Position numbers and translations under genes: made by a program. The notes below the pieces were generated by a model. That model was not told the origin of the DNA, did not search any database, and worked only from the letters and a program-made list of their open reading frames with translations. DNA of 64,000 nt from Oikopleura dioica (lineage: Eukaryota; Animalia; Chordata): the NCBI GenBank assembly GCA_907165135.1, contig OU015567.1, positions 12,648,001 to 12,712,000 of the forward strand, read 5' to 3'. Each line of letters opens with the position of its first letter. Position 1 is the first letter of the stretch. This document shows, one piece after another, positions 8,379-58,388 of this stretch.

Positions 8379-9438
8379 TTCAAAGTGGATAATCAAAACT
8401 TCCGAATTAAAAAAAATTCGCGAAATGGAAATCCTGGATTGAGCGATGTGTTTTAACCGCTTCCGGGTTGAGAAGTGCACAACCGCCAAGCTCATTTGGC
8501 ACCTTGGGTGTTTCCGTTAGCGCTAGAAATCTGGAAATTAACGGAGTAATCGTATCAAGATGGATTTCTTTGAATTCGTTCAACTGGAGATGTTTAGGAA
8601 CAGAAAAAGAGGAGCCATAAGATGCTTTTCATCTCGATATTTATAAATTTTTCAATTTGCTCCCTGGCTGATTAATATATTTTACGTTTTGTCATCTTGT
8701 GCTTTGCGGCACCGTCAATTAAGTGCTAGAAATAAATAACCGCTCCCTCTCAGAAGAGAACACAAACATAAATTCGTCAGTTAAAAACGAAATTCACTCT
8801 TCGCTTGAAACGCATTTTGCCAACAAGTACTGTCGACTCGCCTCTCTGTTTAGTACACTAATTTCACATGCGTTCTTTCACTTTCCACGCTCCCAACTTT
8901 CACCGCACTCGCTCAAATACTACTCGATCCATTACAATAAATTTTCATCCGATTTATATCCGATTTGCGGTCGCCGTTTCCGTGACGATGAACCGTAACT
9001 TGTCCATCAAATTTTCAAAAAGTTCAAAGGAGCCATTCCGCCGGGAGCATTTCCAACTGCTTTCGTAATTTTCGCCACTCGCCGGAAGCTATTTGGGACG
9101 GGCTGATAAATATTTATCGACCGTGGCCGTGAAAGTACAAAAAAGAGCTGTTTGAGAAGCATTGTCACCGGCCTAACAGTGCGACATTTGGGCACACAAC
9201 ACACTTTAGCTAATTAGTAGCTCAAGAAAGACAAGGCAGATCTTCTCGTTATTGGACAATGGACGGGCAAACTACTTGAAAGTCCCGTCTTTGAAGAGTT
9301 GGTTTTTTCTTCGAGGAAGGAAGTGAAGAGTTTGCCCTCGATTATAACCATGATAAGTTACAGTAAGGTGTTTCTGTGCTAATAGCAGCGCTTTTGATCG
9401 TGTTTGTCGAGGAATTATAGTCTGAAAGAACATTTTTA

Positions 9439-10203
9439 GGGCTATAACCTCTCTTTTGGCCTCTCTGGAAAACGGACTTCCCTTGGTCGATTTCAAAAAT
9501 TTAAAAGGCAAATATACTTGTTTTCTCCTAAAAAATTCAAAAATGATATCAAAAAATACTTTTCTTCCGTAAATTTTTATTCTAGAATCATTCAAAAATC
9601 GCCATTCGGTTTTCCAAGAAAACTGGAAGCTCTGAGGTAAAATTAATCCGATTATAATATTAAGTAGAGCATATTCTATGATCCCTATGGAAAAAATATC
9701 AAGAAATTGTCTAAATTATGATTATAGTTCTCTCTTCTTTTAAATCTCTTTTGTTTATAGACGGACGCTTGAGATCCACGCGGCCAATCAGAGCGCGATC
9801 AATCGCTTGACTCACACGCTCGCCAACAGCGCTCTCTTTTTGGCCTGGAGGATAGCACTCCGCGCAGCGCGTCTACGCGCATTTTTATCCTCAGGTGCCT
9901 GCACTAACATGGCGCTAGAATGAAAATTTTAACAGATATCGAAGATTTTTTCCATAGGGATTGTAGAGAAGGCTTTAATTTATTAATTGATCGAAAAAAA
10001 TCTACCTCTGTAATGGTAAAATTCTTCGGAAAACCGAATGGCGTTTTTTAAATGATTGTAAAGTCGAAATTTCGAAAGAAAATATAATTTTTGATGGCAT
10101 TTCTGAAATCTACGATAGATTTTGAGTATATGAGCCTTTTAAATTTTTGAAATCGACCAAGGGAAGTCCGTTTTCCAGAGAGGCCAAAAGAGAGGTTATG
10201 GCC
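9439..10203. mobile_element. MITE with about 270-bp imperfect TIRs, probably PIF/Harbinger (Tourist-like)
   Basis: ATAACCTCTCTTTTGGCCTCTCTGGAAAACGGACTTCCCTTGGTCGATTTCAAAAATTTAAAAGGC at 9444 is inverted at about 10134-10199, and homology continues inward. TTA flanks both ends (9436-9438, 10204-10206). Confidence 0.85.
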
Positions 10204-11354
10204 TTAAGATATTTTTGGTGATCAACTACAGATTTGCATGATTCTCAGTCTAACGAAAAATGATTTACAGCTGATATCACGGTGGTGAGCAGTGAATTTT
10301 ATAAACCCATAATTATTTTGACCACATTAAGGTTTTTAAATAAAGAGAGAAAATATTCTAGAGTTTTTCAAGAGCTACTGATAAGAAAAGTCGGTACCGG
10401 GCGAATCTTGCATTTCAGTCCCCTGCAGGTCTCAAAATCCAACATTGTCCCCTGTCGATCATCATCAAGGTCGGCTCGCCGTGGGTCCATCATTCTTCCC
10501 CATTGACAAGGAATAAAAGCCACTCCGACTTTTTAATTATTTTTAGCTTCTGTCGCCTGTTTCTAATTTTGGAACAATCAGCGGAAAATTTATGGATGGC
10601 GAAATTCCTGAAGAGCTATTTTGGATGAAAAGGCAGTGCCGAAAAGTTTGCGTCTCGAAGATGGAAAGATGGAATTAGAGTTGGTTTTTAGTAGGCTCAG
10701 TACTCGTCGCTAGCAGTGTTAAACATGACCCTTCTGCCCACAGTTAACTTTCAACACGCTCGAAGAAACTTTCCTCTTCCAGAATATTTTGAAAATACAT
10801 TCGATTAACTTCTCAATACACGGGCGCGCAACTAAGCGCTCAAAACACGGGGTCGGGTGAGGGGACCACAATGCATTATTCAGCCCCGCGCGGCGCGCAA
10901 AATTCGGATTGTCAGAAAGAGCGCTCAAGACTTTTAGCTCTAACTTGCGTTTGCGGCGGGTAAAAAGGTAACAATTCATATCGCTGGAAAGCTTGAACAC
11001 TCACCTATCAGGATTAACAATTAATTTTGAAAGACACTTTCTGGATTTGCAGCTGTAGAATGAAAGATGAATCCGGTGCAAAACGCCACCACTTTTGAGA
11101 AAACATCCAAAATTTCACAAAGTGTTTCGTTTTAGTCATCTTAGCTCACATTACAAAAATCAGGTCAAACGGATTATCACAAGAGAAATAACGGCGGCTC
11201 AAAGTCGCCGTGGTCGGTTGAACCGACCACGTGTATTGAGAAGTTAAGTTCACCTGGGCAACCTTTTTCACATTGCGCTTTGAACCGAAAATTTTTCAGC
11301 TTTGCCTCAGCAAATATTGAGCATAAAAGACAACAGTCAATTAGTCAATTTGAT

Positions 11355-14300
11355 TCATGCTGAAGCCTGGTCGAATACTGTTTTAGAGCGTAACATCCGC
11401 TGTTGAGAATTTTTCTGAAGCTCTCCTTCAGAGCAGCCCAAACACTTGAGAACTATCCGCTTCCTGAATGCTCTGATAGGTGTACTTACAGAATGACTTC
11501 GCAAATACAGGGCTTCTATCGTTGTTTGTCCTTCGATTTGGCAGCATCTGTCTAAATCTGAAATAAAAAATTCTCCAAAGTCTTTGATAAGCCCCCTTGC
11601 CGTATGTTCCTGAATTAAAAGATCACTTATAAGACCAAAATTAAAAATACAAAGCTAATAAAAAAGAATCTCCCGGATATCCCAGGCCCCGGAACTGGAG
11701 AGTCCAAAAAGTAAACAGTCAATTACAGAAGGTCAGCAGGAGGTCGCATATGCTGTCACACTCGACGGATAAAGTGCCACTAATACGGTTAACTTCCGAG
11801 CTGAATTGGAAAATTTAGAATTTTTGAAATGTGAGTATTAATAAACACGCGCATCGATTTCTACGTAAATTTTGGGATTTGACGGAATGCGAATATTTTC
11901 GCGCTGTTTTGACTTGATATAAATTGCGCCCAGTGCTTCCCAGTACAGATAATAATTTAATGATTTTGATGAGTTGTTCAAAATCACTGAAATCACAAAA
12001 AATGAAAGATAAGTGCGCTATTTTTTCCGGAAACATGACTTTTTGAACGGGCGTTTTTCAAATTTGTCTGATGAAATTTATTCTTGGTGCTCGCTGTCCA
12101 ACAAGTCTTATGTACTCTGTTGAAGCGAGTGGTGATTAATGGGAAGAAAAACGTTATCGTAAAATTCTACTGTAACTACGTGTCTCTATGTACTTCTGCT
12201 CTCTGTCACCACACTCTCTCTCTATTTACTCTTCTACATTTAAGCGCTCGACGCAAGAATAAAGTAGTCTTCTGTTAGGAAATTACAGGACTCACATTTA
12301 GTCGCATTAAATTGGTGACTGAAGTGAAAAGGACTTCGCCTCTACGAGTTGGTAGATAAGCCTCGGGAAGGAGGTTAAGTTGAGGAATCAACGTTGATTA
12401 AGGAATATTTTGCTTTCTTGAAAGAAAGAGCGGGTTTGACGACTTTTGTTTTAGTAGATGAATCAAGATTAAAGATTGTATGAATCTTAAATCACACTAA
12501 TCATCAGGAAAGGAATCAATAATTTTTCTTAAAATCCAGAATGGCAAAAGAGGAGAGTAAAGAAAATAAGGGCATACCCAAATTCCCCGTTGATCTAGAA
12601 TCATTGAACCAACCACTGATTAAATTCATTTTATCAATTATCGATACTAAAAATTTCGCGGAACTTAAATCAGCAAGAAAACAACAACAGTTAGAAGCTA
12701 TTCAGAATTACGGTCTCGGAAATAATGACACTATTGACTTTGGTGCAATCCATTTTCCAGAAAAAGCATTGTTATGCGTCGTTCCAATAAGTGCGCCTTA
12801 TCAAGTTAATGAAGATAGACAAGACTCAGTAAGAGAACTCGATAGTCTTATTTTAGATTTGGCGAGCAGAGACCCGAAGACTAGTTTTTTCAGTATTGAA
12901 AATTTAGGTGATCCAAATACTTTCGGCACGACTAATGAAACCGGACGACTTTTTATACAGTCGTATCTACCAGAATTCGCGAAATTCAAGCTAGATCAAT
13001 CTGTCGTAAAAACGGATTATGTTTCTAAAAAAGTTGATTTTGAGGATAGGACTCCTGAAACGGATGGTCTACCTACACCGGGTGCATTTTCGCGCAAGCC
13101 AAAATTTAATCCTGATACACCACTCCCATTTTCCACTCCATATTTTATGTCAGATAGACTTCCAAGAAGGTCTCTCTATGAGGACAGTAAGATTTCTGAG
13201 CCAAATCCGGCACCAAGACAACCTAATTTGGAGGAAAGCTTTTCCTCAGCGTTTAGAATCGACCTTAAGGATCAGGCTAAAATTCGGATAACTTTATCGC
13301 AAATGACATTTGAAAAGCTAAAAGATATTTCTAATTGGATGGCAGATGCCCTTTTTCAGTGTAAACTTGCGGGAATCACATCTGAGCAAATTAAAATAAG
13401 TCAGATATTGGCGAATGTGGAGTCAAACTTGAAAAGTCTGCTAATTCGAAAAATGAGTCGTAACGGGCAAATTTCGTGCGATGCTCTTTTGAATGCATTT
13501 TATGAATGCTCAAACTTTACTCCGTTAGATGCGAAAAATTCAATAGAAAAATTCGGGATTTCTCCAAGCCGACCCCTTATCGAGCAATTTTATAAAATGT
13601 TAGGAATGGCGGAAAGGGCATGGCCAGGTCGATCTCAGAACGCGATTGAAGAACTTACTTTGATTGAATTTATTAAGAAAATGCCAACAAAAGTTACTAA
13701 CGAGAGTATTTTTAAACTAAGGGATGAAAGGCTTAGCACGGTTGAAACCCTTAATCTATTGCAGAAATTAACAGATATGAAAAAAGAGTCCAGTGTCGTT
13801 ATAAACGCACTAGACAAGAGTAAAGTGCAGTGCTATTATTGTCAAAAATTTGGTCATACCAAAAAAGAGTGTAGAAAACGGTTAAGAGACCTTGAAAATG
13901 CCAAGAGGAATTCAGGTCAAGACAAAAAATTCTCGAAACCAACCTTTGGTTCTGATAGAAAAGGAGAAAAAAGTCCGTCCCAATTCCAGAGTAAGGGTGA
14001 AAAATCGAATTTCGAGCAAGCCCGACAATCAAAAGGACAGAAGGATCGAAGTAGTGGATCATTCGGAAAAGTCGAACCGGGTAGAAAATGTTTTTTCTGT
14101 GGCAAGGAAGGTCACTACAAAAAAGATTGTTTTAAGTTCAAGAGATATGTAAATTTTTTACAAAAAGAGAATCAAGAAAATGATTCCCAAAAGGAGGGTC
14201 AATCAAGCACTAGCTTTCGCGGCGACTACTTGGATGAGTAATGGGTGAAATTCCAACTTGCTCGGTACAGTTGCTACAGTACCATGGTAGTGAAATAATA

Positions 14301-17300
14301 ACTGTAAATATAAGTAATTGCATTATAGACACAGGATCAAATAGTAGTTATGTACATAGACGCGCAATAGGATCAAAGTTAAAAGAAGAAAATGTGAGGT
14401 ACCAAGTCGGAAACGTAAAACAAAATTCAATGATAAGAATTAACCGCGCCATAAATGCTAATGTAAAAATTGAAGATAATAGCGAAATTTCGAATTGCGA
14501 GTTGTGCATTCTTGAGGATGAAAGTATTACAGTACCCGGCATAGTCGGAATGGACATACTTTCCGATAAAATTATAAGGGCAAAAAACGTGACCATAGCT
14601 CATTCATCGGTAGGATTTCAGAAATCGGAAATCATGGATGATGGAATCAATAATTTAGGAGTAAATTTTTTAAGAAAATCGGTAGATACGCGAGAATCAT
14701 CAGTTTATCTTAGGGCTCTAACGTTAATTGAACCACATTCGGAAGTTTCTTTGCCAACCAGTCGATACAGATATGATAATTTGAACAATTTATCACTTTC
14801 AAAAGATTTAGAAAACGTCGGTGTTATTTTAGAACAAAGAGTAAAGCCGGGAAAATTATCAAGTAATCAAGTAAGAATTCGTAATCCCTCGGAAAATGCG
14901 TTTATTATAGAGGAAGGATCTACTATTTTGAGTCCCTGTAATGGGAATAGAAATGACTTTTCAGAGGATCAAGAGGAAAATAAAATCCTAAACTTTTTAG
15001 TAAATACAAAAGATGTCTCGAATTTCGAAAGAATAGTTCTGAAAAAGGAGCTAGAACAATGGAGACAAAAAAGAAACGAACTTGTTAAAAATGTCTGTGT
15101 TCGTAAAGAAATCGAAAGCGCAGTTAAGGGTGCACCCATTGCTCACCGTGAGGAATTATCAAGGATTTTGGCCAAATTCGATTGGATTTTTTCCCGTCAC
15201 AGTAGCGACTGCGGACTTACGCCTAGGTTTATGGCGGAAATACGTTTGAAAGACAAAAACCAAGAGCCAATTTTCGTTCGTCCATATAAGACAGATAGTA
15301 ATTGCGTAAGAATAGTGGAAGAGAAATTAGAAGAAATGAAAAAAGCAGGCATTTTGGAGCACTGTATCTCCGCCTGGAACAGCCCCCTTCTTACAGTTAA
15401 AAAGCGTGACAACTCAGTTAGGGTGGTCAATAATTACAGTGGAACTAATGGTGGCAAGATGAATCGTGGTTCAGTTAACAGTAACATGTTGTTACCCCGT
15501 TACCCGATTTTACCTATCAGGGTTATTTTGACGAAAATAAGTAATGCAATCTCAGCTTTAAAAATAAAATTTCCAGGTGAAAAAATATGTTTTCTATCAA
15601 TAGACGTAAGAAACGCGTATTACTCATTAGGTCTAACAGAAAAGTCCAGGGACATTACAAGTTTTTTGTTTGGATCAGAGCAGTTGAGATACACTAGAAT
15701 GAGCCAGGGGCTGTCGAACGCGCCAGCAACTTTTCAGTGTTTTATAAGTAAGATCATTGACCGAATTAGATCAGTTGATAAGGACCTTTTCATTATTGGT
15801 TACATGGATGACATATTGTCCATCACCACTCAAAAACGCCATAATGCCGCGCTAGAAAATATTTTTTCAGTTTTAATGAGCGAAAACCTCGTCGTTGCCA
15901 TCAAAAAATGCTCATTTTTCCAGCTTGAAACCGAGTTTTTAGGATATTTAGTAAATATAAATGGTATAAAAGTAAATGACAAAAAGATTAAGGCGTTATT
16001 AGAATTAGAATATCCGACAAGCGCGAAGGGTGCCATGCGCATCATTGGAGCTTTCAATTACTATAATAGACAGGTTAAGGGTATCGCTGCGTTATTAGAC
16101 CCTATCGCCAAATCATGCGGTAAAGGTCGTAATTACGAATTGACACAAGAAATAAAAGACGCACTCGACTTAGTGAAAGAAAAAATTAAGGGAGGGATAA
16201 GCACAAATCATTTAGAGTACGTCGATGGCAGTAACGATCGATACATCTTTATCTGCGCAGATACTTCGCAAGATAAAACAGGTTCTGTAGTCGGAAACTG
16301 CACCATTAAAAATGATAAGATTTCGGAAATTTCGATCGCGGCTTATTTTTCGAAAAGGTTGAGCGAACAGGAGAGTTTACTGTCTTCGAGGGCGAGAGAG
16401 TTAATAGGTTTACAGTACGGTTTGAGGCATTTTTCGGACATTTTGCCTACGTTCCTCAAAGTCATCGCATTTATTGACCATCGGAGTTTGGAGGGGGTTC
16501 ATCATTCAGGAAGTTTAAAAGGATCCGGCAGCACTAGAACAAGATCGGCTTACGCTGACATTTGTGACTTTCCACTCCTAGAAATTCGCTTTTTGCCAGG
16601 GTCTGACAAGTTGATAGGCGTCGTGGATTCTCTCTCTAGGACGGATTCATCTTCAGAAATTTTAAGTCGTGAAATTTTCCATCCAAGAAATGATGGAATT
16701 TTAGCAAAACTGATTCTTTTAAAACAGACAAAGTAAACAGCGTTCTGGAACAAACCTTCGCAAATAGTTGCGACACCGGCCCAAGGTGAAAATTCGTGTC
16801 ATAAAATTCGCTCGAGTCTTGCAGTCTGTGTACCAGGCGGCAAAAAATTTGCATAAATACGGAACGAAAAACGCATGAAAATCAGAAGGCAAGAGAAATT
16901 TTGCCATGAGTTTCGAGCAGGAAACTCCGATGGTCGGAACAGACCAAAACTGCCTCGACTTTTTAGAGGTTTTAAGCCAAAGTCCTGGCCAAAGCTCCGA
17001 AGTAGGAGAGGTCGTATTTTACGACAGGGACCTAAGCATTGGTCCATCCGTCAAGCTTGACGTAGCTCCTTTTGTTAAGGAGGGAGAGAGCACCAAGAAG
17101 ACATCCAAATTACCAACAGAAGCAGTAAACATCAAAGAAATACTCCAACGGGAAAGACACGAAAAAATACAAAGCTTGGTTGAGGCAAGTGAAACAATCA
17201 AAAACGCCAGCGCGAAGAAAAGAAAACTCGTTTGGAAAAACCTAGCAACTCCAACAGATGAAGGAAGATATATGAGATCTCTTCAAGAGAAACTCCAGCC

Positions 17301-18790
17301 CTTCTACCCGTTTTCACTTCCTCCGGCACCCGATCGGCTACAAATTGAACTAGCAGATGCACTCGCTAGGGCAGCACCAATGGAAATCAAGAAGATCTGG
17401 AGGCAAATAGTACAAATGGACCGAAGCGCAAGCGACTCGAACGTTGAAACGACAATCTCGATGAACAATAAAAAACTGTTAGATCTACACAGCCACTTCG
17501 ACGAAATCGACTACGATATAAGATATTTTGCGGGAAATACAAGGTCTACAATATTCTGCGCTCTAATGGCCGATGCGACTCAAGTATTAGCCGCGAATCT
17601 CTACCCGTCCCCGTCGCAACAATTGATGACTGGAGCCCCGGCAATCATCCCCCATTTGAAACTGAATTTACGTGACAGGAAGAAATTGAAGAAATCAGCG
17701 TCGCAGCATTTTGGTGTAACCTTTTAGTTCTCAAAACATGGGGAAGAGTTAATGGGAAGAAAAACGTTATCGTAAAATTCTACTGTAACTACGTGTCTCT
17801 ATGTACTTCTGCTCTCTGTCACCACACTCTCTCTCTATTTACTCTTCTACATTTAAGCGCTCGACGCAAGAATAAAGTAGTCTTCTGTTAGGAAATTACA
17901 GGACTCACATTTAGTCGCATTAGTGATGATTTACAACTGTTTGAGAATATTTCTTTCGATCAAATTTGATCATCGAAATAACGCAAATCTGCTGCAAGAA
18001 GCAATTCCCTGTCAGTCATAAATTTGCTCGACTGGTCTATCACTGTCTCCTTCAGCAATTTTTACAAGCTCGTTTCGTTTGCTTCCTACATAAACAATTC
18101 GAAGAAGTCTGAAACGCGATACTTGAAAGATTTAAAAGGTGATGCAGAAAGGAGCAGTTTTACTAATTCGACCTGCTAGTCACGCCTAGAAAAATGGATG
18201 ATTTACAGAACAGGATCTGTCTCTTTACAAGACATTTTCTATTAAAATGTGTGGCAATTCGAAATTCCACGAAAATTGCGCGAAAAAGCGCTCACACCAG
18301 ATCAAAGGCCAAAACAAACTTTGACGACAAAGTTTAATTAACACATTTTTTTCTGGAAGAAATTCCACAAGTTTGGGAGTTTTCGCTCGAGCGACTGGTG
18401 AGGCTTAAGCCATGGCAATATTTATCAGCATTGGGGGCCAATTCAAGGGGATTACTGGAGCACGAAATCAGCCGCCGAATCTCTGGATTTTCACTTCTGA
18501 AAATTAGTGTGAAGCGCCACACGCTTTGATAGTTCGATACCATAACAAATTTCAAGCGATTTTTGACAGGATCGAGCGTTGGGAACCTCAGCCTAAACAA
18601 AACAGTTGAAATGTATGGTACAACCACGCACGCTCACATCCAGCTGCAGGATTTCCACATCAGTTTCATCCCCCGCATCCGGACGCGCTACACGAACAAA
18701 AAATATTTATTGTTGCTGATTCAATCTCAATCTGAACTTAATTTCTCTGCTGACAAAAAAGACTACTCACAGTTTCCATTAATAGATCAT
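11355..18790 (-). CDS. Tentative multi-exon orphan gene whose intron appears to host the LTR element
   Basis: Chains of short exon-like segments with plausible splice sites and compatible phases lie on both sides of the element, e.g. SEVNRISGTLSVECDSICDLLLTF|YLDRCCQIEGQTTIEALYLRSHS at about 11800-11490 and VARPDAGDETDVEILQLD at about 18690-18635. The model is incomplete and the boundaries approximate. Confidence 0.3.
12137..12309 (+). repeat. 5' LTR (173 bp)
   Basis: Starts TAATGGGAAG, ends GTCGCATTA, contains AATAAA. Identical by eye to 17750-17922. Confidence 0.97.
12312..12325 (+). other. Putative primer-binding site
   Basis: TGGTGACTGAAG begins a few nt after the 5' LTR. TGG is complementary to the tRNA CCA end. 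Primer tRNA identity not assignable by eye. Confidence 0.55.
12541..14241 (+). CDS. gag: Gag (566 aa) with two CCHC zinc knuckles
   Basis: CYYCQKFGHTKKEC and CFFCGKEGHYKKDC (CX2CX4HX4C), first ORF after the 5' LTR. Confidence 0.93.
   Translation: MAKEESKENKGIPKFPVDLESLNQPLIKFILSIIDTKNFAELKSARKQQQLEAIQNYGLGNNDTIDFGAIHFPEKALLCVVPISAPYQVNEDRQDSVRELDSLILDLASRDPKTSFFSIENLGDPNTFGTTNETGRLFIQSYLPEFAKFKLDQSVVKTDYVSKKVDFEDRTPETDGLPTPGAFSRKPKFNPDTPLPFSTPYFMSDRLPRRSLYEDSKISEPNPAPRQPNLEESFSSAFRIDLKDQAKIRITLSQMTFEKLKDISNWMADALFQCKLAGITSEQIKISQILANVESNLKSLLIRKMSRNGQISCDALLNAFYECSNFTPLDAKNSIEKFGISPSRPLIEQFYKMLGMAERAWPGRSQNAIEELTLIEFIKKMPTKVTNESIFKLRDERLSTVETLNLLQKLTDMKKESSVVINALDKSKVQCYYCQKFGHTKKECRKRLRDLENAKRNSGQDKKFSKPTFGSDRKGEKSPSQFQSKGEKSNFEQARQSKGQKDRSSGSFGKVEPGRKCFFCGKEGHYKKDCFKFKRYVNFLQKENQENDSQKEGQSSTSFRGDYLDE
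14241..16736 (+). CDS. pol: Pol (831 aa): aspartic protease, reverse transcriptase, RNase H; no integrase
   Basis: IIDTGS protease motif. RT motifs IDVRNAYY, MSQGLSNAPATFQ, YMDD, FLGY. RNase H residues ADTS, ARE, IDH, VDSLSR. The ORF stops about 30 aa after VDSLSR with no HHCC or DDE region. Confidence 0.95.
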   Translation: MGEIPTCSVQLLQYHGSEIITVNISNCIIDTGSNSSYVHRRAIGSKLKEENVRYQVGNVKQNSMIRINRAINANVKIEDNSEISNCELCILEDESITVPGIVGMDILSDKIIRAKNVTIAHSSVGFQKSEIMDDGINNLGVNFLRKSVDTRESSVYLRALTLIEPHSEVSLPTSRYRYDNLNNLSLSKDLENVGVILEQRVKPGKLSSNQVRIRNPSENAFIIEEGSTILSPCNGNRNDFSEDQEENKILNFLVNTKDVSNFERIVLKKELEQWRQKRNELVKNVCVRKEIESAVKGAPIAHREELSRILAKFDWIFSRHSSDCGLTPRFMAEIRLKDKNQEPIFVRPYKTDSNCVRIVEEKLEEMKKAGILEHCISAWNSPLLTVKKRDNSVRVVNNYSGTNGGKMNRGSVNSNMLLPRYPILPIRVILTKISNAISALKIKFPGEKICFLSIDVRNAYYSLGLTEKSRDITSFLFGSEQLRYTRMSQGLSNAPATFQCFISKIIDRIRSVDKDLFIIGYMDDILSITTQKRHNAALENIFSVLMSENLVVAIKKCSFFQLETEFLGYLVNINGIKVNDKKIKALLELEYPTSAKGAMRIIGAFNYYNRQVKGIAALLDPIAKSCGKGRNYELTQEIKDALDLVKEKIKGGISTNHLEYVDGSNDRYIFICADTSQDKTGSVVGNCTIKNDKISEISIAAYFSKRLSEQESLLSSRARELIGLQYGLRHFSDILPTFLKVIAFIDHRSLEGVHHSGSLKGSGSTRTRSAYADICDFPLLEIRFLPGSDKLIGVVDSLSRTDSSSEILSREIFHPRNDGILAKLILLKQTK
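16906..17727 (+). CDS. ORF3 of the LTR element, 273 aa, unknown function
   Basis: ATG-initiated uninterrupted ORF between pol and the PPT. Basic KKRK and RDRKKLKK patches. No obvious signal peptide, TM segment or catalytic motif. Confidence 0.75.
   Translation: MSFEQETPMVGTDQNCLDFLEVLSQSPGQSSEVGEVVFYDRDLSIGPSVKLDVAPFVKEGESTKKTSKLPTEAVNIKEILQRERHEKIQSLVEASETIKNASAKKRKLVWKNLATPTDEGRYMRSLQEKLQPFYPFSLPPAPDRLQIELADALARAAPMEIKKIWRQIVQMDRSASDSNVETTISMNNKKLLDLHSHFDEIDYDIRYFAGNTRSTIFCALMADATQVLAANLYPSPSQQLMTGAPAIIPHLKLNLRDRKKLKKSASQHFGVTF
17740..17748 (+). other. Polypurine tract
   Basis: GGGGAAGAG one nt upstream of the 3' LTR. Confidence 0.8.
17750..17922 (+). repeat. 3' LTR (173 bp)
   Basis: Identical to the 5' LTR, followed by the TSD GTGAT. 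Confidence 0.97.
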
Positions 18791-18825
18791 CTTTTCTAAG
18801 CAATAAAATTTCATTATTTTTCAGT

Positions 18826-18946
18826 TGAAATCGAGAAGCCGCTCGCGGCTTCGAGCTTCGAAAATATAATAGCCGCGCAAAGCGCGGCTTTAATAATTAT
18901 TCTCGAAGCCGCAAGCGGCTTCTCGGTTTTGAGGGCCTCGATTTCA
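18826..18946. repeat. Nested palindrome with three AGCCGC/GCGGCT hairpins inside TGAAATCGAG...CTCGATTTCA inverted ends
   Basis: AAGCCGC-TC-GCGGCTT, AGCCGCGC-AAA-GCGCGGCT and AAGCCGC-AA-GCGGCTT, separated by AT-rich spacers. Confidence 0.8.
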
Positions 18947-19149
18947 GGGACAAAAGTACTCTAACTCTAGCCCGAGCCATTTTTTTTGCAGAAAAAGCAA
19001 CAACATGAAAAATCTTTCTTAGAAGTTTTTAAAAAATGATCCGAAAATAACCGCTCAGGAGCACAAAAACAGCGGTTTGTTGAGTTGTCCATCCGCTGCT
19101 AATCCGTAATTGTGACCTGAATAATGACGGAAAGGGACAGGCGCAGCGG

Positions 19150-20353
19150 CGGTTCATCTAAGAAAGGTGCTGAGCCGAGCTGGAGGAAGTTTAGAAAACC
19201 TCGTCCTCGGGAAGGCTCTAATCCGCCAATCCACAGTGTTCTTTTTCCCTGCGTCTTCAAACACAAGATCAATCGTTCTTTATTTTTGGAGGAAAGACAG
19301 CGCGTCGGGAGCCAGCAGTCAATCTCAGCGTTTGACAGCAATGCTCACTCTATCCAATATCGCCAAAATTCATTCAGAAATCAGGAATGTCAATAAGTCT
19401 ATCGCAGCTTATGTTTTTGATACACTTCCAAAATTTTCACAAGCTGGCAAAAATCTGACTCAGGGTCTGAAAATGCTTTTCAATTTAATAAAAGCTGCTT
19501 CAGGAGTCCCTGACTCAGGTTTTCTACACAGTTCTCCGAGTCTTGAACTTGAATTCGCTCGAATTTGTATCTTTCTATTGACTTTTCATATTTGATATTA
19601 ATATTTTGCAATTTATCGATAATTGTAAATTCTTACTCTTGTTATTTCTCGCGTAAATTGTTACCGTAAATTGAAAATTGAACGATCTTTTCGCGAAAAT
19701 GCGCCAAAAAAGGTTGATTTAATTCTTGCGGCTCATCTTCACTGGAAGCGATTTTGGCCCAGTTGTGGCCTGGTTTGAATCCCATCATCGAATCTGGGAT
19801 CTGGCCTTGATGCGAATCACATTTTCGATCCAGATTACTGCCACTCGCCAAATTTACCAAATAACTGCTTATGAGCCTGCCTCCGTGCTCTGGGCCCCTG
19901 CCGCTTGTAAACAAACTTTCGCGAAAATTGTAGCGATAAGGAGTGATTATCAGCGTTTTCTTACTCTCAGCAGGGGATTTTTCGATTATGCTTTTTCATC
20001 AAATAAAACTTAAAGTTTACCTTTTCATTAATTTTTCCTAAGAAATCGATTTTTACGCGCGCTTCGTAAAAATTAATATTTTCAATCAATGATTATCTCT
20101 ATCAATCTTTGTTTTGTCCATCTCAGATCCTCTTGCCCGGAAACTTAACCTGTTCGCGTGCCGAAAAACAATCCATTTCGATAAAAATTCTCTTGCGTCA
20201 GATCTCGGCAGGGGCTCCATCAAACTCTTTATCACTGCCTCGCCTAGTCATCTTATCAGACTTCTCCCGCCATCAGTGCGCGGCGGATCATCCATCAATG
20301 TCTCAGCTAGTCACTCTCGTCTCGGCTTGTTACGTAAAAAGCCAACCGGTTAA
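19150..20353 (+). CDS. Tentative multi-exon orphan gene
   Basis: Three protein-like open segments (LRKVLSRAGGSLENL...MLTLSNIAKIHSEIRNV...; DFGPVVAWFESHHRIWDL...; DPLARKLNLFACRK...KPTG*) separated by AT-rich intron-like spacers. Splice sites only partly resolved. Confidence 0.35.
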
Positions 20354-21647
20354 AAACACACAAGAAAATCACTTCTCTTTTTTTCTCAGCGTCTTTAAAA
20401 TTCTACAACTGCAGATTTTTAACATAACTTTTAAATAAACGCATCTCCTCAAAAAATAAACTTTCAATGAATAGCTCTGTATATTGTGCATTTCGTGGAT
20501 CGCCAAGTTTCGAAATTTTGAATTTTGCTCTCTAAAACAACCGGTTGCAAGTATTTTTGGGAAAATAATTATTTTCGGGAGGAATTTGTTATTTGAGCCG
20601 ATTACGAGTCTTGGATCGGATTTTTGTTGTTGCTGTATTTTGAGGATGAAAATGCGAAATTTATACCATAAAACAGCATTAATTGATAATGCTAAAGAGT
20701 ACGTATACTAAAAATTACTCTTGTAGTAGTATCATTCTACTAAATTGAAGTTAAACTGACATTTGTTATGCAAATAACGAGCCTAAGTGTCCTCATGTTC
20801 AAAATATTTAATGAGCCTGTAGTTCAGTCCCCAATACAGTCACACGATATTTAATTATTTTTAACATACAGATATGACGATAGCAACCCCTTTTTTATAT
20901 TCAAGAAATCATGAAAATACCGCGAAAACAAATGAAAATGGCCTCAGAATCGCCCCAGGCTATGAAAAAAAGTTTTTTCCAGGTGTTTTCTAGAGTTTAG
21001 ACGATGACAAAAACGGTCAAGATAATGATTTATCCCCAAGTTGAAATTTTTGTCAAAATTGAAAATTTATATTTTTTCCGACCAATACAATTTGCCTTGA
21101 TTGTGAGAATTCTACGATAGCTCCTTTTTCATTACTGTCTAATTCAACGATACAGAATTTTCTGCAAAACATAAAAGAGGAAACTATCTTCAATTTATCA
21201 ACTCCTATTTCAGAAATCAACTAAATTGGCTTGAAATATTCCGACAGAAGTTTGCGCCTCCCCATCTGATTCGAATCATCAAGCCTCAATCATATTTATC
21301 AGGGATTATCAATTAGTAATCCCCCTGAATTCACGCGCTATCCCGTCGATTCCTCAAAATCGTCAGCGCGCGCATTTGCGCGGCGCGACACTCCGGCTCC
21401 ACCTGCCGTTTTGCGCCGCTCAGTTGGCGCTGTTGCAGCGCGGCGCAGCGAATTCCGCGCGCTCCGTTTTCCGTACTTTTCAGGCAATACAAAAAATTTT
21501 TCAGCCATCTTTTTTATAACAACTCAAAAACAGATAAAAATCCGAGATCGTCGCCGGATAACTGAACAGAGCTAAATAACGAAAATCAAGGAAGAAAACG
21601 TAGAGATTTTTCAAAGAAAAAACAACCGAAGAAAGAAAATTCTCCAG

Positions 21648-27600: not shown

Positions 27601-30600
27601 CCCACCCGGTAGTCCGATTTCAAACGCCACTTGAACTTGGGCCGGAACACATTACCGGTGAGGCGGCTCGTTTCCCGCCCATCAGCGGCGGATAGAAGCC
27701 GCTTACTCAAGTGCCTCGTTTGGTGAATCTTCCTTGTAGTTGCTTCGTGTTTTTAGAAAGCGATTTAGAGATGATTTGCATAAGATTACGGCCTTGCTAA
27801 CCTTGCAGTCATAACATTGTTACCTTCACAAAAATACCTAATTTCTACACTCATGTTTGATTTTGCGTACTCCTAGAATTCTTAAGCTAGACATTCTTAT
27901 ACATCTTTTTCTGGAACGCTGTCGGGCCTGGTTAGCTCAGTCGGTAGAGCGTTGGACTCTTAATCCAACGGTCGCGGGTTCGAGCCCCGCATTAGGCTCA
28001 TCTTTTCCCTTTTACATTCTTGAGTTTTTGATTGACACGTGACATGAATGTAACATTCACCATCCGCTGTTTCCGCTCATGTCAGAAACTTACGCAAGGT
28101 TCTGAACCATAAGTACGATCGAATGACGATAAGTCAAGGCTTAAAAAAAGATGGCAACCCCAGAGTTGCGAATTTTGTGAGCTAGCTGAGCTGAGCTATC
28201 TGAGCTAGCTGAGCTACAGCTCAGCTCAGCAATTTTGAGGTAAGGGTCAGCTCAGCTCAGCTCAGCTCAATTTTTCTGAAGAAAACTAGCTCAGCTCAGC
28301 TCAATAGTTTTTCGAAAAGAGCCAGCTCAGCTCAGCTAGCTCAATTTTAACCTCAGCTCAGCTAGCTCAGCTCATCTCAGTCTATTGAGCTGACCAAGAT
28401 CGAACCACTTTTGATTGGTCTTATTTTCAAAAACTTACACGTATTTTCTATTTCTGCTTTCCTGTTGGTCAGTTTTAGATAGAAATAATTCGAGTTTTCT
28501 TTGAAGCAAGAGAGAAATAAGATAAAAATAGCTTTTAATAAAAAATAATAAGGTACAGATGGTAAATATGTGATTGCAAATGTGAGAGACCCCCTAGAAT
28601 GGTCTAGGGGTGTGCGAGGGCAGGGGCTCCCTGTCCGTCTACTCTAGAAGGTTGAAACATTGGCTCACCCACATAAGTGATACCACTGTATCGTATTTTG
28701 GAGGATTTCTTATTGTTAAATGACAGAATAAATTTTTTTTATGTCAAAAAAGTGCGATGTTGCGAGTGAGATGCTGGTCTAGGGGTGTGTGAGGGCAGGG
28801 GCTCCCCTGTCCATCTACTCTAGAAGGTTGAAATTCGCTTCAACACATTTTGTTGACATTTTTTGTAGTAAATAAAAATCAGCTTTCTCAGCTCAGCTCA
28901 GCTAGCTCAGCTCAGCTCAGCTCAGCTCAGCTTAAAAAAATGGTCAGCTCAGCTCAGCTAGCCCAGTTTGAGAAATCATCAGCTCAGCTCAGCTCAGCTC
29001 AAAAATTTTCAAATTTGCCCCAGCTCAGCTCAGCTCAGCTCAATTTTTTTGAAAAAAATCAGCTCAGCTCAGCTTAGCTCAGTTGTTCTTAAAGGGGGCC
29101 AGCTCAGCTCAGCTCAGCTCAATTTCGACCTCAGCTCAGCTAGCTCAGCTCAGAAAAAAATTTCAGAAATTTGCAACTCTGGGCAACCCTAAACAAGGGC
29201 GTATTTATTTAACCCTCCGCGGTCAGGTTTGAGCACTTTGAGCAAGTTTATACGTAGGGTCCTTTTTTCCTTGAGCGGAGTACGAAGGAAGGAGGTTTGA
29301 GGAATCTAGAGTGCGATAAAATAATCGTTACTGAGGTTGATTTATTTGCCCAGGGATCGCGCTAATCCCCAGTTCGCAATTCTTATCATAATTAGGAAAG
29401 AAAGAGTTTCGAGGATTTTTTCGCCGCTCGGAAAACCGGGTGGTATCAGACACTAATGCGGATTAGTACTTGTCTCCCATTTCCTTCTGGAACAGAAACG
29501 CAGCACTTTTTCGTTTCTACTTTTCTTTCCATTGTGAATTGGAATCACTTTTGAAGCTGCTTGAGACGGATACATCCTTAGCTTTTCTCGATCTCAAAAT
29601 GCACCACGAACTGAATTGGCTCCTCTGCTTCCGGTATTCCACGGCAGAGCACTTGAATCACGTTCCCAGTTCACCAATTTGGGATAAAATCGAACTGATC
29701 ACACTCTCTGATCATCGGAGCGGCTCCACTCCACTTGAACATTTCAACCCAGCGATCTTCAATGATGGACACATTTTTCGCACTTAGAGCTGAAGTTTGA
29801 TCGATTTTGGCGTTTTTCACAGTAGCGGGCACTTCACCTGCCTCCCATGCATCAAACTGGGTTCCCTTAAAAATTCTAACAAAGCTAACGTGTTAATTTC
29901 AGGTTGCAACGCTTGAGGACGGATATCAGACGAAAACGATTGAATTGTCGACGAATGGAGACTTTTACTTGGCATACAAGGTAAGAAAAAGAATCTTATA
30001 TCAAGGATATTTAATACTTTAATTCCTACTACTACTGCAGATGGCGATAAAGCTGCCCTTCCGCTGAAAGTACACTCCGTTTTTTCATGTCAAAAGTTGT
30101 AACATGATGTTTGAGAGGCTAATTAATCCAAGCTACTAGTTTTTCAACGTTCCCGATTCCACTTTTCGCCAATAAGTGCCTCACGTGCGGATCGAGTCTA
30201 AAAATCACATTCTTCCGCTGTTTTTCTTAGATATAGCAGCTCCATATTTTGATAGGGGAGATTGTGGTGGAAGGGGACTAGCTATTTGCGGCGCCCCGAT
30301 CGGGACTCTTCTTTTGATAAGGGCTAAGCTGGCGCCGAAATCCATCATGTGTAGGGAAACTCGACGAAAAATGAGCTATTTTGGGCTTAGTAGGGAGGAG
30401 TATAATGCATGTTTAGAAAGCCCAGGAGCTGGGGATCATTTTGACTATTGACAGTAAGGGTTTGACTCATGCCCCGGGGCACTTTGGCCTTCCAAAGAGG
30501 CAAAATCTGGTACTCTCGGGAAAAGGGACCGTAGCTTCTAGTATCCCGGGTCTGTGGATATGAAACCTATACCAGATTGTAGAAGAGACTCTGACGGTTC

Positions 30601-36600: not shown

Positions 36601-39600
36601 AATGAAAAAAAAACGCGGTGAACGATTTGCAATCTGCGAGCATTGGTCGTTTTGAGCTGCGTGTTTTGCGGCCCTATCGCTCCAGTTATCATCACCACTA
36701 GCAGGTTTTCTAACCATAACGCAACCTGCAACGCGCCAATATGCCAAAAGTACAAGCTGATATCCATAAGAGTATGATTTAGAAAAGCGGCGAAATCCGT
36801 ACTTTATCATGTACTTTTTCTCAACCAACGCATATCTATACCAACAAGCACGATATACCAACAGCTTCCAAAATTGGAAATAGGCTCAATTCGCTTGAAA
36901 CAGATGAAAATCGAGGAGTTAATATAAAATTTCCAGCTCCAGGAATTTCTTTAATAAAGAAGGAATGCTACGCGTCCTTCTGATTATCACTTTCCGATCA
37001 TTTTTTCAATAAGTTTGTTTTTGGAACGGGTTCAAGAACACCCGCGCTAGAATTCAGATAATAACTGTCTTTTGCTATATTTATAATCGGGAATGTATTC
37101 GGCTTCACACGCATTTACGATTTTCGGCGAAGCATATTTACGATTCAGCAGGAACAATGTACTTTTTCGTTTTTCCCAAAACTAATTCTACACCACTCAT
37201 TAGCTATTCTCTACCTTCGTTTGTGTTGATTCCGCGAAATGAGAAAAGAGCTTACGGAGGATAATGAATTTCTGGCTTTGCCAAAATCGCGGGATGACGC
37301 CTTCTAAATCAGATTTGCGGGAAAGAGAGGATGAGACGGCCTGGGAATCTGACCTCGTCGGGAAAAGCACTCTCGTGTGGTCAAGTCTTGGTCTTGTACC
37401 AGCAAGAAGGACAAGCTGGAGTCGCGCCTTGGTCAATTTCTGGTCATCGGCCAAGTCATTTTTGTCATTTTTTTTCTAGCGCGCAGCGAAAATTGATCTT
37501 TCTTTCAGATTGATGCATTTTGATCCTCTCTTGATTCTTTTGAAAATAAAGAATTTTTTGGCATGACGCCACGTGACCGTCTTTTGTCACTTAGAAGGCG
37601 CCTTGAAAAATGGAGATCTAGTTATGCACTCGCTTCTTGCGCTGCGTCTTTTGGAAACTCGATTCTCTGGACGGCGTAATAAATGATGGACAGGCTATCT
37701 TTTCCGTCATGCTCCAGTGCCAGTTATTAACACGTTGTTCTTTCAGACTCGAGTGCCAGCAGTGCGAAGAGGGATGGAGAAGCTGCCGACCCTGTGGAAA
37801 CACCGTCCAGATGCCTTCAGAGGAGATTCGCCCTAATGCGGTCCAGAACTTCGTGAAAATCCGTCAATTAACGGCAAATACTTCCTACCGCGTCAAGGTA
37901 AATAGAAAACACCAATTCTCTATTTTTCAACCCCTCCCAGTTCCCGTGATGTGTGCGAATGTAATATTTAGACACTTTCTAAAAACGCGCCATCGTAATT
38001 TAAAATTGAGGCGCGGCTAACTTACTTTTTCAGCCTCTATTTCTGGAGGCTTACCGCTCCGTAATCCTGATTATAGATCCGCAAATGCTTCCGGTCAAAC
38101 GCGGTTTCACTACGTTTTCGTTTTAAACTTTCCTTTTTTTTTTGCTCGGATGCGATACCGCAAGACGTTATTCCACACTTTGTCCGTTGCATAAAGTGCG
38201 TTGCGTTCTCAGAAAGTACTTTCTTTCCAGACTAGTTTTTTAACCTCGTTCTATTAGCTTATATGTTCCGAAAGAAGTATTTTTCCAAGGAAAGATTTAT
38301 ATTTCTCATGTACTTCAGAACTACTGAGCGCTGACTTTTCCCTTGAAAAGGGTTAAAAAGAGGATAATTTTCTGACTTGCCTATTTTTAGAAAGGAAGTT
38401 TTATGTACGTACCTATTTTTGAAAATCTGACGGAAAGAGCGGAAGCCTTCCAAACGGATAAGATTGTAAACACCGGAAGTGACCAACTATTTACTTCTGC
38501 AACATTGTAAAACCTCTCAGGTCATGAGATTACAAAGAGCTTTGCAATTAACTTTACTTTCGCCATTCACCTGCCCCTACTTTCCCAAGCTTTTATCGTA
38601 ATAGAGCAATTAATTATGAATTTCTTTTAGGTTCACGCTTTGAACGGAGTTTCTGACGTGGCTCAACAGGCGCCGAACTTTGGAGAAGTCCGATTCCGAA
38701 CTCAGTCGAGCCAGTTCCTAAACTCTGATTCCAGCGATTTCTCTTATTACAACAAGATCGTCGGCTCCGTCATCGTCACTGAAAAGGATGAAACATCTGC
38801 GCGACTAAGCTGGTCTCGACCGACCGGTGCTGTGGACCAAGTTTTCGAAATCCGACATCGTGCCAACTCCGCCCGCTGGAACATGGACACCATGCGCAGC
38901 GCGGATTACAAGCTCATTGGCTTGCTCCCGAATACCGAGTACACTGTTCAGGTAAGAACAACATTACCCTTGTCGAGCGTGCGCTTAGCCTACCCAACTA
39001 TTTTGTTAGAAGTTTTAACGATTAAAAATTAAGGCTCTCATTCCAAATATCTAAAAATTTCCCTAATTCTCTATTTTTAGGTTCGTGCAATTGTCGATGG
39101 AGAATACGGCCCCTGGTCTACAGAAGAGATATTCAGAACTACTCGATCAAATGAAGCTGTTCAACTGACAGTTACTGAAGAAGAAGAGCCTGTTAGCTGG
39201 CTGATTGTCATTGTCTTTGCTGGCCTTGGAGTTGTCACTGCCATGGCTGCAATTGTTATCTTCATAGTCCGAAGAAATTCTCGAAGATGGTCAAAAGAGT
39301 CTCGTGGTTCTTTCTGGGGAGGACAAACTTCTGGCCCCGCTGGAACAATGGATGCCACTGTTGATCTCATTCCCTGCAAAATCAATGCACCCGAGTTCTC
39401 CTACGTCGACTCAAGAACTGAGACCGCCACTTACTCTTCTTTTAATTCCTCTGGTTCCGACCCTTCTCGAGTAATTGTAGAAGCCGACATCGGCCACGAC
39501 GGCGAGTTTACTTACTCCTACGGAAAACTCAACGGTCGCGATGTCGCCATCAAAGCCAGTCCCGTCAACGTCGAATCACTCCGCCGCGAAGGCGAAGCTC

Positions 39601-40226
39601 TTGGCCAATTCGACCATCCAAATGTCCTTCGCTACGAGTCTATCAATGACAAGTACTCTCCCTACTACCTGATCACCGAGTTCTGCCAAAAGGGCGCTCT
39701 TTCTGATTTCGTCCGAACAGCCCGACCAGACTCGAAGCTCTCTACTCGAATGCTCCTTGATGTTGCTGAAGGATTGAGCTACCTCCACCACCAGAAATCC
39801 TACATCCACGGCGCAATCCAAGCGAGCAACATCATGGTCGCTGCTGATGGCACTTCTAAGGTTTCCGGCTTCGGAGACAATTCTCCTGATGCAATGCGAT
39901 ACGCCGCACCAGAATGCATCGCCAACAATCGAGTTTCAAACATTTCCTTCCACTCTGACGTCTGGGCGTTCGGAATTCTCATGTGGGAAGTCTTCTCCAA
40001 TGGTGAGCGCCCATACGCTGCTTTTGAAGATGCTGATATCGTGCCAGAACTCGCTCGTGGTCAGCGACTCCCTCGTCCAACTGGCTGCCCTGAGCCGATT
40101 TTCAACTTGATGGTCGCTTGTTGGAGCCAAAGTCCTTCCAACCGACCTCACTTCCACGAGATCGTCCAAGAACTCGACCGAGTTCTTTGTGAAATGACGA
40201 ATGTCCCTACTGGTGTTGCCGTCTAA
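21648..40226 (+). CDS. Eph: Eph-family receptor with predicted pseudokinase domain and no SAM domain (12 exons: 21648-21693, 24314-24396, 24806-24960, 25206-25296, 29903-29980, 31739-31903, 32350-32454, 35991-36146, 36193-36301, 37747-37897, 38631-38951, 39081-40226; about 868 aa)
   Basis: Signal peptide MRRLLLLAGLISA. Ligand-binding-domain motifs (YILDTS...WED...RALQICE...GAQKVFVEIKYSLRDC...GDFYLAYKDHGAC), Cys-rich region (PTMTCLSDGEW...CVCQAGYE; CLVCPANS...CTCLDGFYR), two FN3 repeats (GGRSD, GEYGPWS), TM segment and tyrosine-kinase fold. All introns are GT-AG. Exon 6 is 1 nt short (see findings). Confidence 0.92.
27926..27998 (+). tRNA. tRNA-Lys-CTT: tRNA-Lys (anticodon CTT), inside Eph intron 4
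   Basis: GCCTGGT/ATTAGGC acceptor stem, D arm GCTC-AGTCGGTA-GAGC, anticodon arm TTGGA-CTCTTAA-TCCAA, T arm GCGGG-TTCGAGC-CCCGC, and a downstream T-run terminator. Confidence 0.95.
28161..29181. mobile_element. hAT-type MITE (1021 bp) with subterminal (CAGCT)n arrays
   Basis: TIR CAGAGTTGC(G/A)AATTT at both ends. 8-bp TSD GGCAACCC (28153-28160, 29182-29189). Dozens of CAGCT/GAGCT pentamers at about 28180-28390 and 28878-29152. Confidence 0.9.
28600..28833. repeat. Pair of ~58-bp direct repeats (28600-28657, 28775-28833) inside the hAT MITE
   Basis: TGGTCTAGGGGTGTG(C/T)GAGGGCAGGGGCTCCC(C)TGTCC(G/A)TCTACTCTAGAAGGTTGAAA occurs twice. Confidence 0.85.
30352..31303. mobile_element. hAT-type foldback MITE (952 bp) with about 400-bp TIRs, in Eph intron 5
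   Basis: Starts TAGGGAAACTCGACGAAAAATGAGC and ends GCTCATTTTTCGTCGAGTTTCCCTA. 8-bp TSD ATCATGTG (30344-30351, 31304-31311). Confidence 0.95.
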
Positions 40227-57725: not shown

Positions 57726-58388
57726 TTAATTGCCATTTCTGACCATTCGTCGCGGGTTATTCTTTTCGCGTTCCATTCTCGCCAATTTAGTCTTCGTCAG
57801 CCGCGTCAGTTCGTAAAGATGGTCGTCCTCGACAAACGGTAGAAACTCGCGCTGCCATTCGGCCAGTCGGAAGAGATATTCCACGTTGGACCCGGTCGGC
57901 CCGCTTGCATTCGCGATGATGTCAGATAATTCTTCAATGGACTGTTCGCCCGTGAATTGGTCGTTTTCTGGCGTGGCGGTGTAGACCAGCGCTGGAATTG
58001 GCGCGAACTCGGCGCTGTGGAAATCTTCGACGCTCAAGGAATAGCCGCCAAGGGTGGATTCTCGCATGTTCAAATGCTCTAATGCTGCAGCAATTTGCTC
58101 TCTTCCGGAAAGTTTGTACGCGCAGCCGTATGTCTCCGATCTTCCAGTTTGGTCCTTCATCAGAGTGGCTACTCGCCCGGGTCGACCTGGTCGGCCCCTG
58201 TGCGTCGTATTTCCTTGGTAAAATCGGCGACGATAGCCAAGGATCTTCCCGACGATCTTGTCCGAGAAGCAGAAGTTCGGGAGCCAGACAAGCGATCCGT
58301 AGCCGAAGACCCAAAGCTCTTCCAAATTCGCCAGCGCGTCAAATTGAGACAGCCGGATTAATTCGTTAATTCTCTTCGCAATTACCAT
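57726..58388 (-). CDS. CHAC1: ChaC-family glutathione-specific gamma-glutamylcyclotransferase
   Basis: WVFGYGSL, RRFYQG...HRG..PGRVATL, catalytic RE (LNMRE), GPTGSNVEYL. Intronless, 220 aa. CHAC1 versus CHAC2 orthology not resolved. Confidence 0.93.
   Translation of the reverse strand: MVIAKRINELIRLSQFDALANLEELWVFGYGSLVWLPNFCFSDKIVGKILGYRRRFYQGNTTHRGRPGRPGRVATLMKDQTGRSETYGCAYKLSGREQIAAALEHLNMRESTLGGYSLSVEDFHSAEFAPIPALVYTATPENDQFTGEQSIEELSDIIANASGPTGSNVEYLFRLAEWQREFLPFVEDDHLYELTRLTKTKLARMEREKNNPRRMVRNGN

Follow-up and report, generated by a model that had tools for sequence, protein, structure and literature searches.

How does a retroelement that encodes no integrase come to lie between perfect target-site duplications (TSDs)? 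This question is raised by an element of ~5.8 kb at positions 12137-17922 of a 64,000-nucleotide stretch of the Oikopleura dioica genome (OKI2018_I69 chr2; contig OU015567.1, positions 12,648,001 to 12,712,000), which we call the window and to which all coordinates refer. The element carries long terminal repeats (LTRs), gag, pol and a third open reading frame (ORF3), all intact and stop-free. The original prediction, made from the letters of the DNA, saw in it either a one-off deletion derivative or a semi-autonomous lineage that makes its own particle and cDNA, borrows integrase in trans and has ORF3 in the integrase slot. Our comparisons with a diverged family argue that the integrase-less junction between pol and ORF3 is inherited.

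A young Ty3/gypsy-type insertion that lacks integrase

The two LTRs (12137-12309 and 17750-17922) are 100% identical across 173 bp. A repeat finder gives 174 bp, as a T precedes both copies by chance, and we counted the LTR as 173 bp. The flanks, GTGAT on both sides, form a perfect 5-bp TSD, which would occur by chance about once in 1000. Thus, the identical LTRs, the perfect duplication and the three intact ORFs of the original prediction are all borne out (coordinates in Table 1). We conclude that a Tor-like endogenous retroelement of the Ty3/gypsy type inserted here recently, the Tor elements being Ty3/gypsy-like endogenous retroviruses of O. dioica with a TSD of 4-5 bp (PMC4402516). Its direct LTRs with short inverted termini and a TSD within 4-6 bp, its CCHC Gag, the Pol order of protease (PR), reverse transcriptase (RT) and RNase H, and its top matches, which are gypsy-type polyproteins, all agree with the Ty3/gypsy type. 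The element departs from this type in the C-terminal integrase of Pol (HHCC and DD35E), which is absent in all frames. Because integrase is missing, yet identical LTRs and an intact TSD mark recent mobility, the element classes as a non-autonomous LTR retrotransposon. A DIRS/Ngaro-type tyrosine-recombinase element was considered and rejected, as there was no Phage_integrase-type match and the copy has plain direct LTRs and a 5-bp TSD instead. No further copy, solo LTR or fragment of the element was found elsewhere within the window.

The nearest pol proteins, found in a search of 5.8 billion clusters, are five proteins from marine metagenomes or sequencing-run assemblies (P0001-P0005) with 37-45% identity. 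Four of them (P0001-P0004) are about 1290-1300 aa long, while P0005, of 1028 aa, comes from a locus in which pol is divided into two gene calls. All five contain an rve core, which in the full-length proteins lies near residues 950-1050. We found that tblastn with five integrase-bearing relatives ends at 16640-16691 and gives no other match in the 64 kb. A hidden Markov model (HMM) of the relatives' integrase regions, run against six frames of the element and the window, returned only E>1. Both searches uphold the earlier statement that no frame holds an HHCC or DD35E segment. After the terminal RNase H motif VDSLSR, pol continues for 31 aa, in keeping with the predicted length of about 30; this tail includes a short IFxP segment and terminates in LILLKQTK, and in the alignment its stop falls where the relatives proceed into the N-terminal region of integrase. 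LTRs, leader, gag, pol, the 169-bp spacer and ORF3 together take up the whole 5.8 kb, which leaves no space where an integrase could be hidden.

The remaining enzymatic motifs are all retained: alignment with the relatives shows DTGS, YMDD and the four RNase H motifs ADTS, RELIG, DHRS and VDSLSR. Gag residues 257-553 are homologous to the gag of the relatives. Residues 1-256 (12541-13308) have no Pfam match and no similarity to it. Between protease and RT, ~250 aa of pol (residues ~130-380; 14631-15380) are without a Pfam match yet common to the relatives. The pol frame is open for only 2 codons ahead of the pol ATG. Stop-start overlaps take the form TAATG in the window and ATGA in the relatives at loci L001-L005, and pol/third-ORF junctions are ATGA or TAAAATG. 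From this arrangement the clade seems to translate pol by termination-reinitiation or independent initiation, and not by -1 frameshift.

The integrase-bearing relatives encode gag, a pol with integrase and a third ORF of one of two kinds: 705 aa, with a signal peptide and a membrane span at the C-terminus, or about 142 aa, containing a hydrophobic span. There is no LTR similarity between the window and loci L001-L005, and we therefore regard these as cousins of the window element and not as its helpers. One of them, L003, is a 12.3-kb metagenome contig whose ends (1-141 and 12143-12283) are identical over a length equal to the assembler k of 141; the most likely cause is that the assembly path circled through a repeat, rather than a true pair of LTRs. 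For the PBS-like site (PBS, primer-binding site), no priming tRNA match was found, and the sole tRNA of the window, Lys-CTT, does not match it.

Searches for further copies of the element beyond the window gave none. The exact gag, pol and ORF3 proteins are not in the protein collection. A scan of JGI metagenomes with the ORF3 protein gave 0 matches, as did ORF3 and pol scans of viral contigs. A 21-mer from the LTR likewise had 0 matches in the viral, metagenome and prokaryote contigs searched. A literature search of incomplete coverage turned up no paper on a Tor element without integrase.

The pol-ORF3 junction in a diverged family

A full HMMER pass over 1.84 billion representatives returned exactly two homologues of ORF3. 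One of them, P0019, has 281 aa and is 52% identical to ORF3 across its full length; its cluster, here called family B, has three members from three samples, at loci L006, L008 and L009. The other, P0020, is encoded on a contig of 534 bp and shares 76% identity with ORF3 residues 1-88. In family B, ORF3 is followed on its 3' side by a purine tract and then by an LTR whose whole length can be aligned with the window LTR. Past the LTR end, the flanks of L006 and L008 are wholly different, and thus family B occupies two or more insertion sites.

L008 is the sole family-B contig that reaches upstream of ORF3. Its positions 1101-1381 align with window 16688-16949 at 69% identity (E 3e-33), and this alignment takes in the final ~14 codons of pol, a stop at the corresponding position, the spacer, the invariant TATA-like block ATAAATACGGA and the start of ORF3. 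The match between the two pol tails (NDKIFEKLIPLKRK against NDGILAKLILLKQTK) has a score that was reached by 4 of 5000 shuffles. Because the diverged L008 has the same succession of pol tail, stop, spacer and ORF3, the integrase-less junction appears to be older than the split of the two families. An ancestral integrase between tail and spacer would need two identical later deletions; we therefore take the junction as inherited. Judged by these alignments, the junction is old, and an origin in a one-off deletion is disfavoured.

Upstream of the junction in L008, pol is not detectable, while ORF3 is intact. The 1.1 kb in question (1-1100) is AT-rich (33% GC), has an open frame of 87 aa that continues beyond the start of the contig, and shows no similarity to gag, pol, Pfam families or the other loci compared. 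Family B thus looks like a lineage in which pol was lost too and ORF3 was kept intact, with ORF3 and the LTRs as a persistent core. The earlier proposal of a semi-autonomous lineage therefore stands in part: the L008 junction supports an inherited loss of integrase, whereas a clade that is uniformly semi-autonomous is at odds with the missing pol of L008.

The LTRs of the two families also share local similarity. Window positions 12162-12269 match L008 2252-2357 and L006 944-1033, where a 28-nt block and a block around the poly(A) signal are up to 91% identical; ORF3 DNA identity between the families is only about 68-75%, below that of the conserved LTR blocks. Such a pattern points to strong constraint on the LTR in cis, or to exchange of LTRs.

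The contig L007 is 84% identical to the window at the nucleotide level from the promoter block into ORF3. Its positions 1-164 form an open frame ending in TAG, and L007 could be a recombinant with another pol 3' end, possibly even an integrase-bearing carrier of ORF3. We did not count it as evidence for or against inheritance of the junction.

ORF3, a conserved orphan gene

ORF3 begins downstream of a 169-bp spacer that contains blocks conserved in L007 and L008, and it apparently forms a separate cistron with its own TATA-type internal promoter, the TATA-like block being invariant in the window, L007 and L008. Thus, ORF3 would not fill the integrase slot, as had been suggested; it lies outside the Pol polyprotein, in the position that env takes in Tor3b/4b. 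Met9 (16930) is the likelier start of ORF3, given that the ATG ahead of it is absent from family B. The spacer also holds a perfect palindrome with a 6-bp stem (TCGCAAATAGTTGCGA, 16758-16773), in a block that is kept in L008 with one stem mismatch, and this palindrome may serve as a binding site for a protein. RNA folding of the spacer as a whole was unremarkable (z = -1.6). Scanning metagenome, viral and prokaryote sequences with the pattern of the TATA-like block gave 19 matches, all by chance (bacteria or a viral contig).

We evaluated selection on ORF3, as the original prediction had proposed, in both comparisons. Between the window and L007, dN/dS was 0.35; between the window and family B, pN was 0.31 against a saturated pS of 0.77. 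On these ratios, ORF3 is to be read as a real, conserved gene under purifying selection. The protein has an acidic N-terminal part of ~70 aa (pI 4.3), followed by a basic, predicted helical body (pI 9.6). Predicted to be soluble, it has neither a signal peptide nor a membrane span, its maximum Kyte-Doolittle-19 value being 1.24 as compared to 2.98 in the 705-aa third ORF of the relatives. AlphaFold models of the full length (3 sequences) and of the C-terminal 201 aa (4 sequences) reached a pLDDT of 37 and 40, too low for fold comparison; from these low-confidence models, ORF3 is predicted to be all-helical.

Comparison of ORF3 with Pfam families and PDB sequences gave no match. Three candidate identities were rejected. 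ORF3 has no BLASTP similarity to the relatives' integrases, its hhalign probability against the clade integrase profile is 0.1% and the integrase HMM gives E 8; a diverged integrase, which the original prediction had named as an outcome that would overturn it, was thus not seen. An Env identity was dismissed because ORF3 lacks a signal peptide or membrane span and has no similarity to the third ORFs of L001-L005, L010 and L011. A duplicated or diverged Gag or capsid found no support in hhalign against the gag alignment (probability 0.1%).

Explanations for an element without integrase

The explanation that we consider probable, with confidence that stays well short of certainty, is an integrase-less clade that arose by ancestral loss and is served in trans by the integrase of helper Tor elements, with ORF3 aiding its propagation. 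The common ancestor of the clade would have lost the entire integrase coding region. Genomic RNA driven by the LTR would give Gag and, via some coupling at the TAATG overlap, PR-RT-RNase H, and the element's own Gag, protease, RT and RNase H would presumably make particles and cDNA. Insertion of this cDNA with a clean 5-bp TSD may then be carried out by a retroviral-type integrase that a different Tor element in that cell provides. ORF3 would probably be expressed from a predicted subgenomic RNA whose start lies past the TATA-like block and whose end is set by the poly(A) signal of the LTR. Because ORF3 survives where pol does not, we think that it serves the spread of a dependent element; propagation of the non-autonomous element is its most likely role, and this is the weakest step of the argument. 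As a guess of low confidence, ORF3 may be an accessory factor that acts on the element RNA, the cDNA, the pre-integration complex or the helper proteins. More specifically, and in our opinion doubtfully, it might be a 'hijacking' factor of a parasitic clade, one that lets integrase-less elements, and in family B elements with no pol detected beside ORF3, capture the integrase, the pre-integration complex or the particles of autonomous Tor elements, or that replaces a function linked to integrase, such as nuclear entry or chromatin tethering. If true, this would be a two-component retroelement system in an animal, with ORF3 and the LTRs as its selected core.

Several observations weigh against the helper-dependent explanation. 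A partner that encodes integrase and matches the element in LTR ends or PBS did not turn up among the relatives compared. The pol-intact, integrase-less form is known as one copy, the window element, and neither tblastn nor tblastx found pol in the 1.1 kb upstream of the L008 junction. Lasting upkeep of gag and pol without integrase would therefore follow from a single intact copy together with the age of the junction, and recombination could have recreated the combination of gag-pol and junction more recently. The first 164 nt of L007 are unalignable by BLASTN, and their resemblance to the pol tail is weak (115 of 5000 shuffles for the protein, 14 of 2000 for the nucleotide sequence). The promoter, transcript and function of ORF3 are predictions.

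An origin by one-off internal deletion would make the window element a single dead-end copy of an integrase-bearing family, mobilized by integrase from intact siblings. It would fit the single pol-intact copy, with no other in the window, and the rve domain carried by every detectable pol relative. We nevertheless hold it to be very unlikely, since L008, with its family members L006 and L009, disfavours this half of the original prediction: L008 has the same junction though its ORF3 differs at about 50% of residues and synonymous sites are saturated, and for two separate deletions to share their end points is very improbable. The same contig speaks to an assembly collapse at about 16.7-16.9 kb that dropped integrase, a general possibility with a Nanopore-based assembly that had also been named as a potential refutation. 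We consider this scarcely credible, given that the junction recurs, in diverged form, in an independent short-read assembly of another sample (L008), that L007 independently has the promoter block and the ORF3 start, if not the pol-stop stretch, and that the reading frames on either side of the junction are clean. Insertion without any integrase, by host recombination, is improbable, if less so than the collapse or the deletion. Here, cDNA would enter by single-strand annealing at homology to the PBS or the polypurine tract (PPT), or would replace or recombine with an older related LTR or element and inherit its TSD. Such a route is known for Tf1, which inserts at pre-existing related elements (PMC11042837), and the target of the window element contains TGGTGA, the first 6 nt of the PBS-like site. 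Against it stand the perfect 5-bp TSD and the complete LTR ends, which are an integrase signature, and the lack of a Tf1-type signature: the downstream flank starts differently from the stretch that follows the 5' LTR, and only 1 nt of the upstream flank agrees with the end of the PPT. Moreover, conversion of an older related insertion, which keeps a small probability for this one copy, would still require a founder made by integrase at this site, and the family-B copies occupy different sites.

The two other alternatives concern ORF3. It could itself be the integration enzyme or an essential part of it, that is, a novel or unrecognisably diverged integrase or recombinase, and the element would then be autonomous. 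ORF3 is conserved, is the sole unexplained protein, adjoins the 3' LTR and is kept when pol is lost, all of which such a role would explain. We judge it to be highly unlikely, as ORF3 resembles neither the relatives' integrases nor Pfam or PDB sequences, the low-confidence models predict an all-helical protein as opposed to the alpha/beta RNase-H-like core of DDE integrases, and the 5-bp staggered duplication is typical of DDE integrases. ORF3 could also be a remnant or a radically shortened Env, in which case the element would be a Tor element from which integrase and a portion of env were deleted. Its location where env would be and, as described for Tor4b (PMC4402516), a spacer that carries a putative internal promoter are in line with this. 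It too has little probability, however, because there is no signal peptide, hydrophobic span or similarity to the relatives' third ORFs, and because conservation across the full length, at 273-281 aa in both families, argues for a complete protein. Thus, among the readings weighed here, ancestral loss of integrase with helper integrase in trans remains the one that we prefer.

The element is closest in organization to the Tor elements, with which it shares the host species, the layout of LTR, gag, pol and third ORF, and the near-identical LTRs and intact ORFs of young copies. As in Tor4b, a space separates pol from the third ORF, and the conserved TATA-like block in it suggests an internal promoter; in Tor3b/4b, an internal env promoter has been mapped in the pol-env space (PMC4402516). 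The main difference is that described Tor Pols include integrase, having been aligned over RT and integrase (PMC4402516), whereas the Pol of the window element has none. In addition, Tor Env is a glycosylated transmembrane protein, while ORF3 is predicted to be soluble, has far fewer residues than the relatives' env-like ORF of 705 aa and is unrelated in sequence to the env-like ORFs compared, which were the third ORFs of the relatives. The Tor affinity is suggested by layout and host; by sequence, the nearest pols are the metagenome proteins described above.

Non-autonomous LTR elements are known mostly from plants, and what they have lost is usually either RT along with integrase or the entire coding capacity. 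Pairs such as RLG_Cereba/RLG_Quinta (PMC11302176) and BARE-1/BARE-2, as well as TR-GAG, LARD and TRIM elements (PMC13570524), are likewise mobile despite missing machinery; some have intact ORFs that include a domain or ORF of unknown function (DUF1 of Quinta), and parts of their LTRs are conserved. They lack RT and integrase jointly, or Gag alone, whereas the window element lacks only integrase and has an animal host. Pairs of this kind are recognized by a PBS, LTR termini and part of the LTR that are common to the integrase-encoding partner (PMC11302176). Tf1 likewise shows that insertion is possible without an element's own integrase; its insertions lie at PBS/PPT homology or older elements and have no regular duplications, in contrast to the perfect 5-bp TSD and the absence of in-register homology at the window copy (PMC11042837).

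Two virus groups offer further parallels. The tas/bet genes of foamy viruses are accessory genes of complex retroviruses that use an internal promoter, with integrase and env kept. Similarly, the window element has an extra non-structural ORF near the 3' LTR, possibly with an internal promoter; there is no sequence relation. Caulimoviridae-type pararetroviruses combine a Gag-like protein, PR, RT, RNase H and extra ORFs with the absence of integrase and LTRs, and integration is not part of their cycle. The window element differs from them in having LTRs, a PBS-like site, a PPT and a TSD.

The locus would represent an animal lineage that shed integrase alone. At least one young copy still has intact Gag, PR, RT and RNase H, and the conserved orphan gene persists in a sister family whose pol appears to be gone. 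With its genome of 65-70 Mb and its documented active and polymorphic Tor elements, O. dioica is a tractable host in which to study division of labour among retroelements, the LTR features read by integrase in trans and a new class of accessory protein.

Features and surroundings of the insertion

Table 1. Positions of the element's features and of other features in the window
Feature	Position	Strand	Basis or remark
Left TSD copy, GTGAT	12132-12136	+	flank comparison
5' LTR, 173 bp, TAATG...CATTA	12137-12309	+	AATAAA at 12258-12263
PBS-like site, TGGTGACTGAAG	12313-12324	+	3 nt after 5' LTR; starts TGG
ORF1, gag, 566 aa, two CCHC zinc knuckles	12541-14241	+	Pfam zf-CCHC twice
gag stop/pol start overlap, TAATG	14239-14243	+	
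ORF2, pol, 831 aa, PR-RT-RNase H, without integrase	14241-16736	+	Pfam RVT_1, RT_RNaseH; TAA 16734-16736
Protease motif DTGS (residue 30)	14328-14339	+	
RT	~15510-15947	+	
RT motif YMDD (residue 521)	15801-15812	+	
RNase H	~16242-16640	+	
RNase H motif VDSLSR	16623-16640	+	residues 795-800 of 831
pol-ORF3 spacer, 169 bp	16737-16905	+	blocks conserved in L007 and L008
TATA-like block, ATAAATACGGA	16853-16863	+	putative internal promoter
ORF3, 273 aa, orphan protein	16906-17727	+	
PPT, GGGGAAGAG	17740-17748	+	1 nt before 3' LTR
3' LTR, same sequence as 5' LTR	17750-17922	+	AATAAA at 17871-17876
Right TSD copy, GTGAT	17923-17927	+	
tRNA-Lys(CTT)	27926-27999		
Tyrosine kinase domain	39243-40226		
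SRCR/TIL/thyroglobulin-1 repeat protein	41219-44212	-	
Muscle-type myosin heavy chain	47246-52576	-	two giant ORFs
WD40 fragment	60772-61350		

The pre-insertion target GAGTGGTGATGA (12126-12136/17923-17930) includes the TGGTGA shared with the PBS-like site. Its position is out of register for insertion by PBS homology, and the match is probably due to chance (about a few per cent).

A ChaC gene on the minus strand (57726-58388) encodes a protein 100% identical to that of O. dioica OKI2018_I69 chr2, and the element is therefore resident in an Oikopleura genome. Host genes with very long exons occupy 39243-61350. Outside the element, the region of ~9000-21000 contains no ORF of more than about 140 aa on either strand, and the insertion lies in apparently non-coding DNA; this neighbourhood of ~12 kb is unusually gene-poor for the compact O. 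dioica genome.

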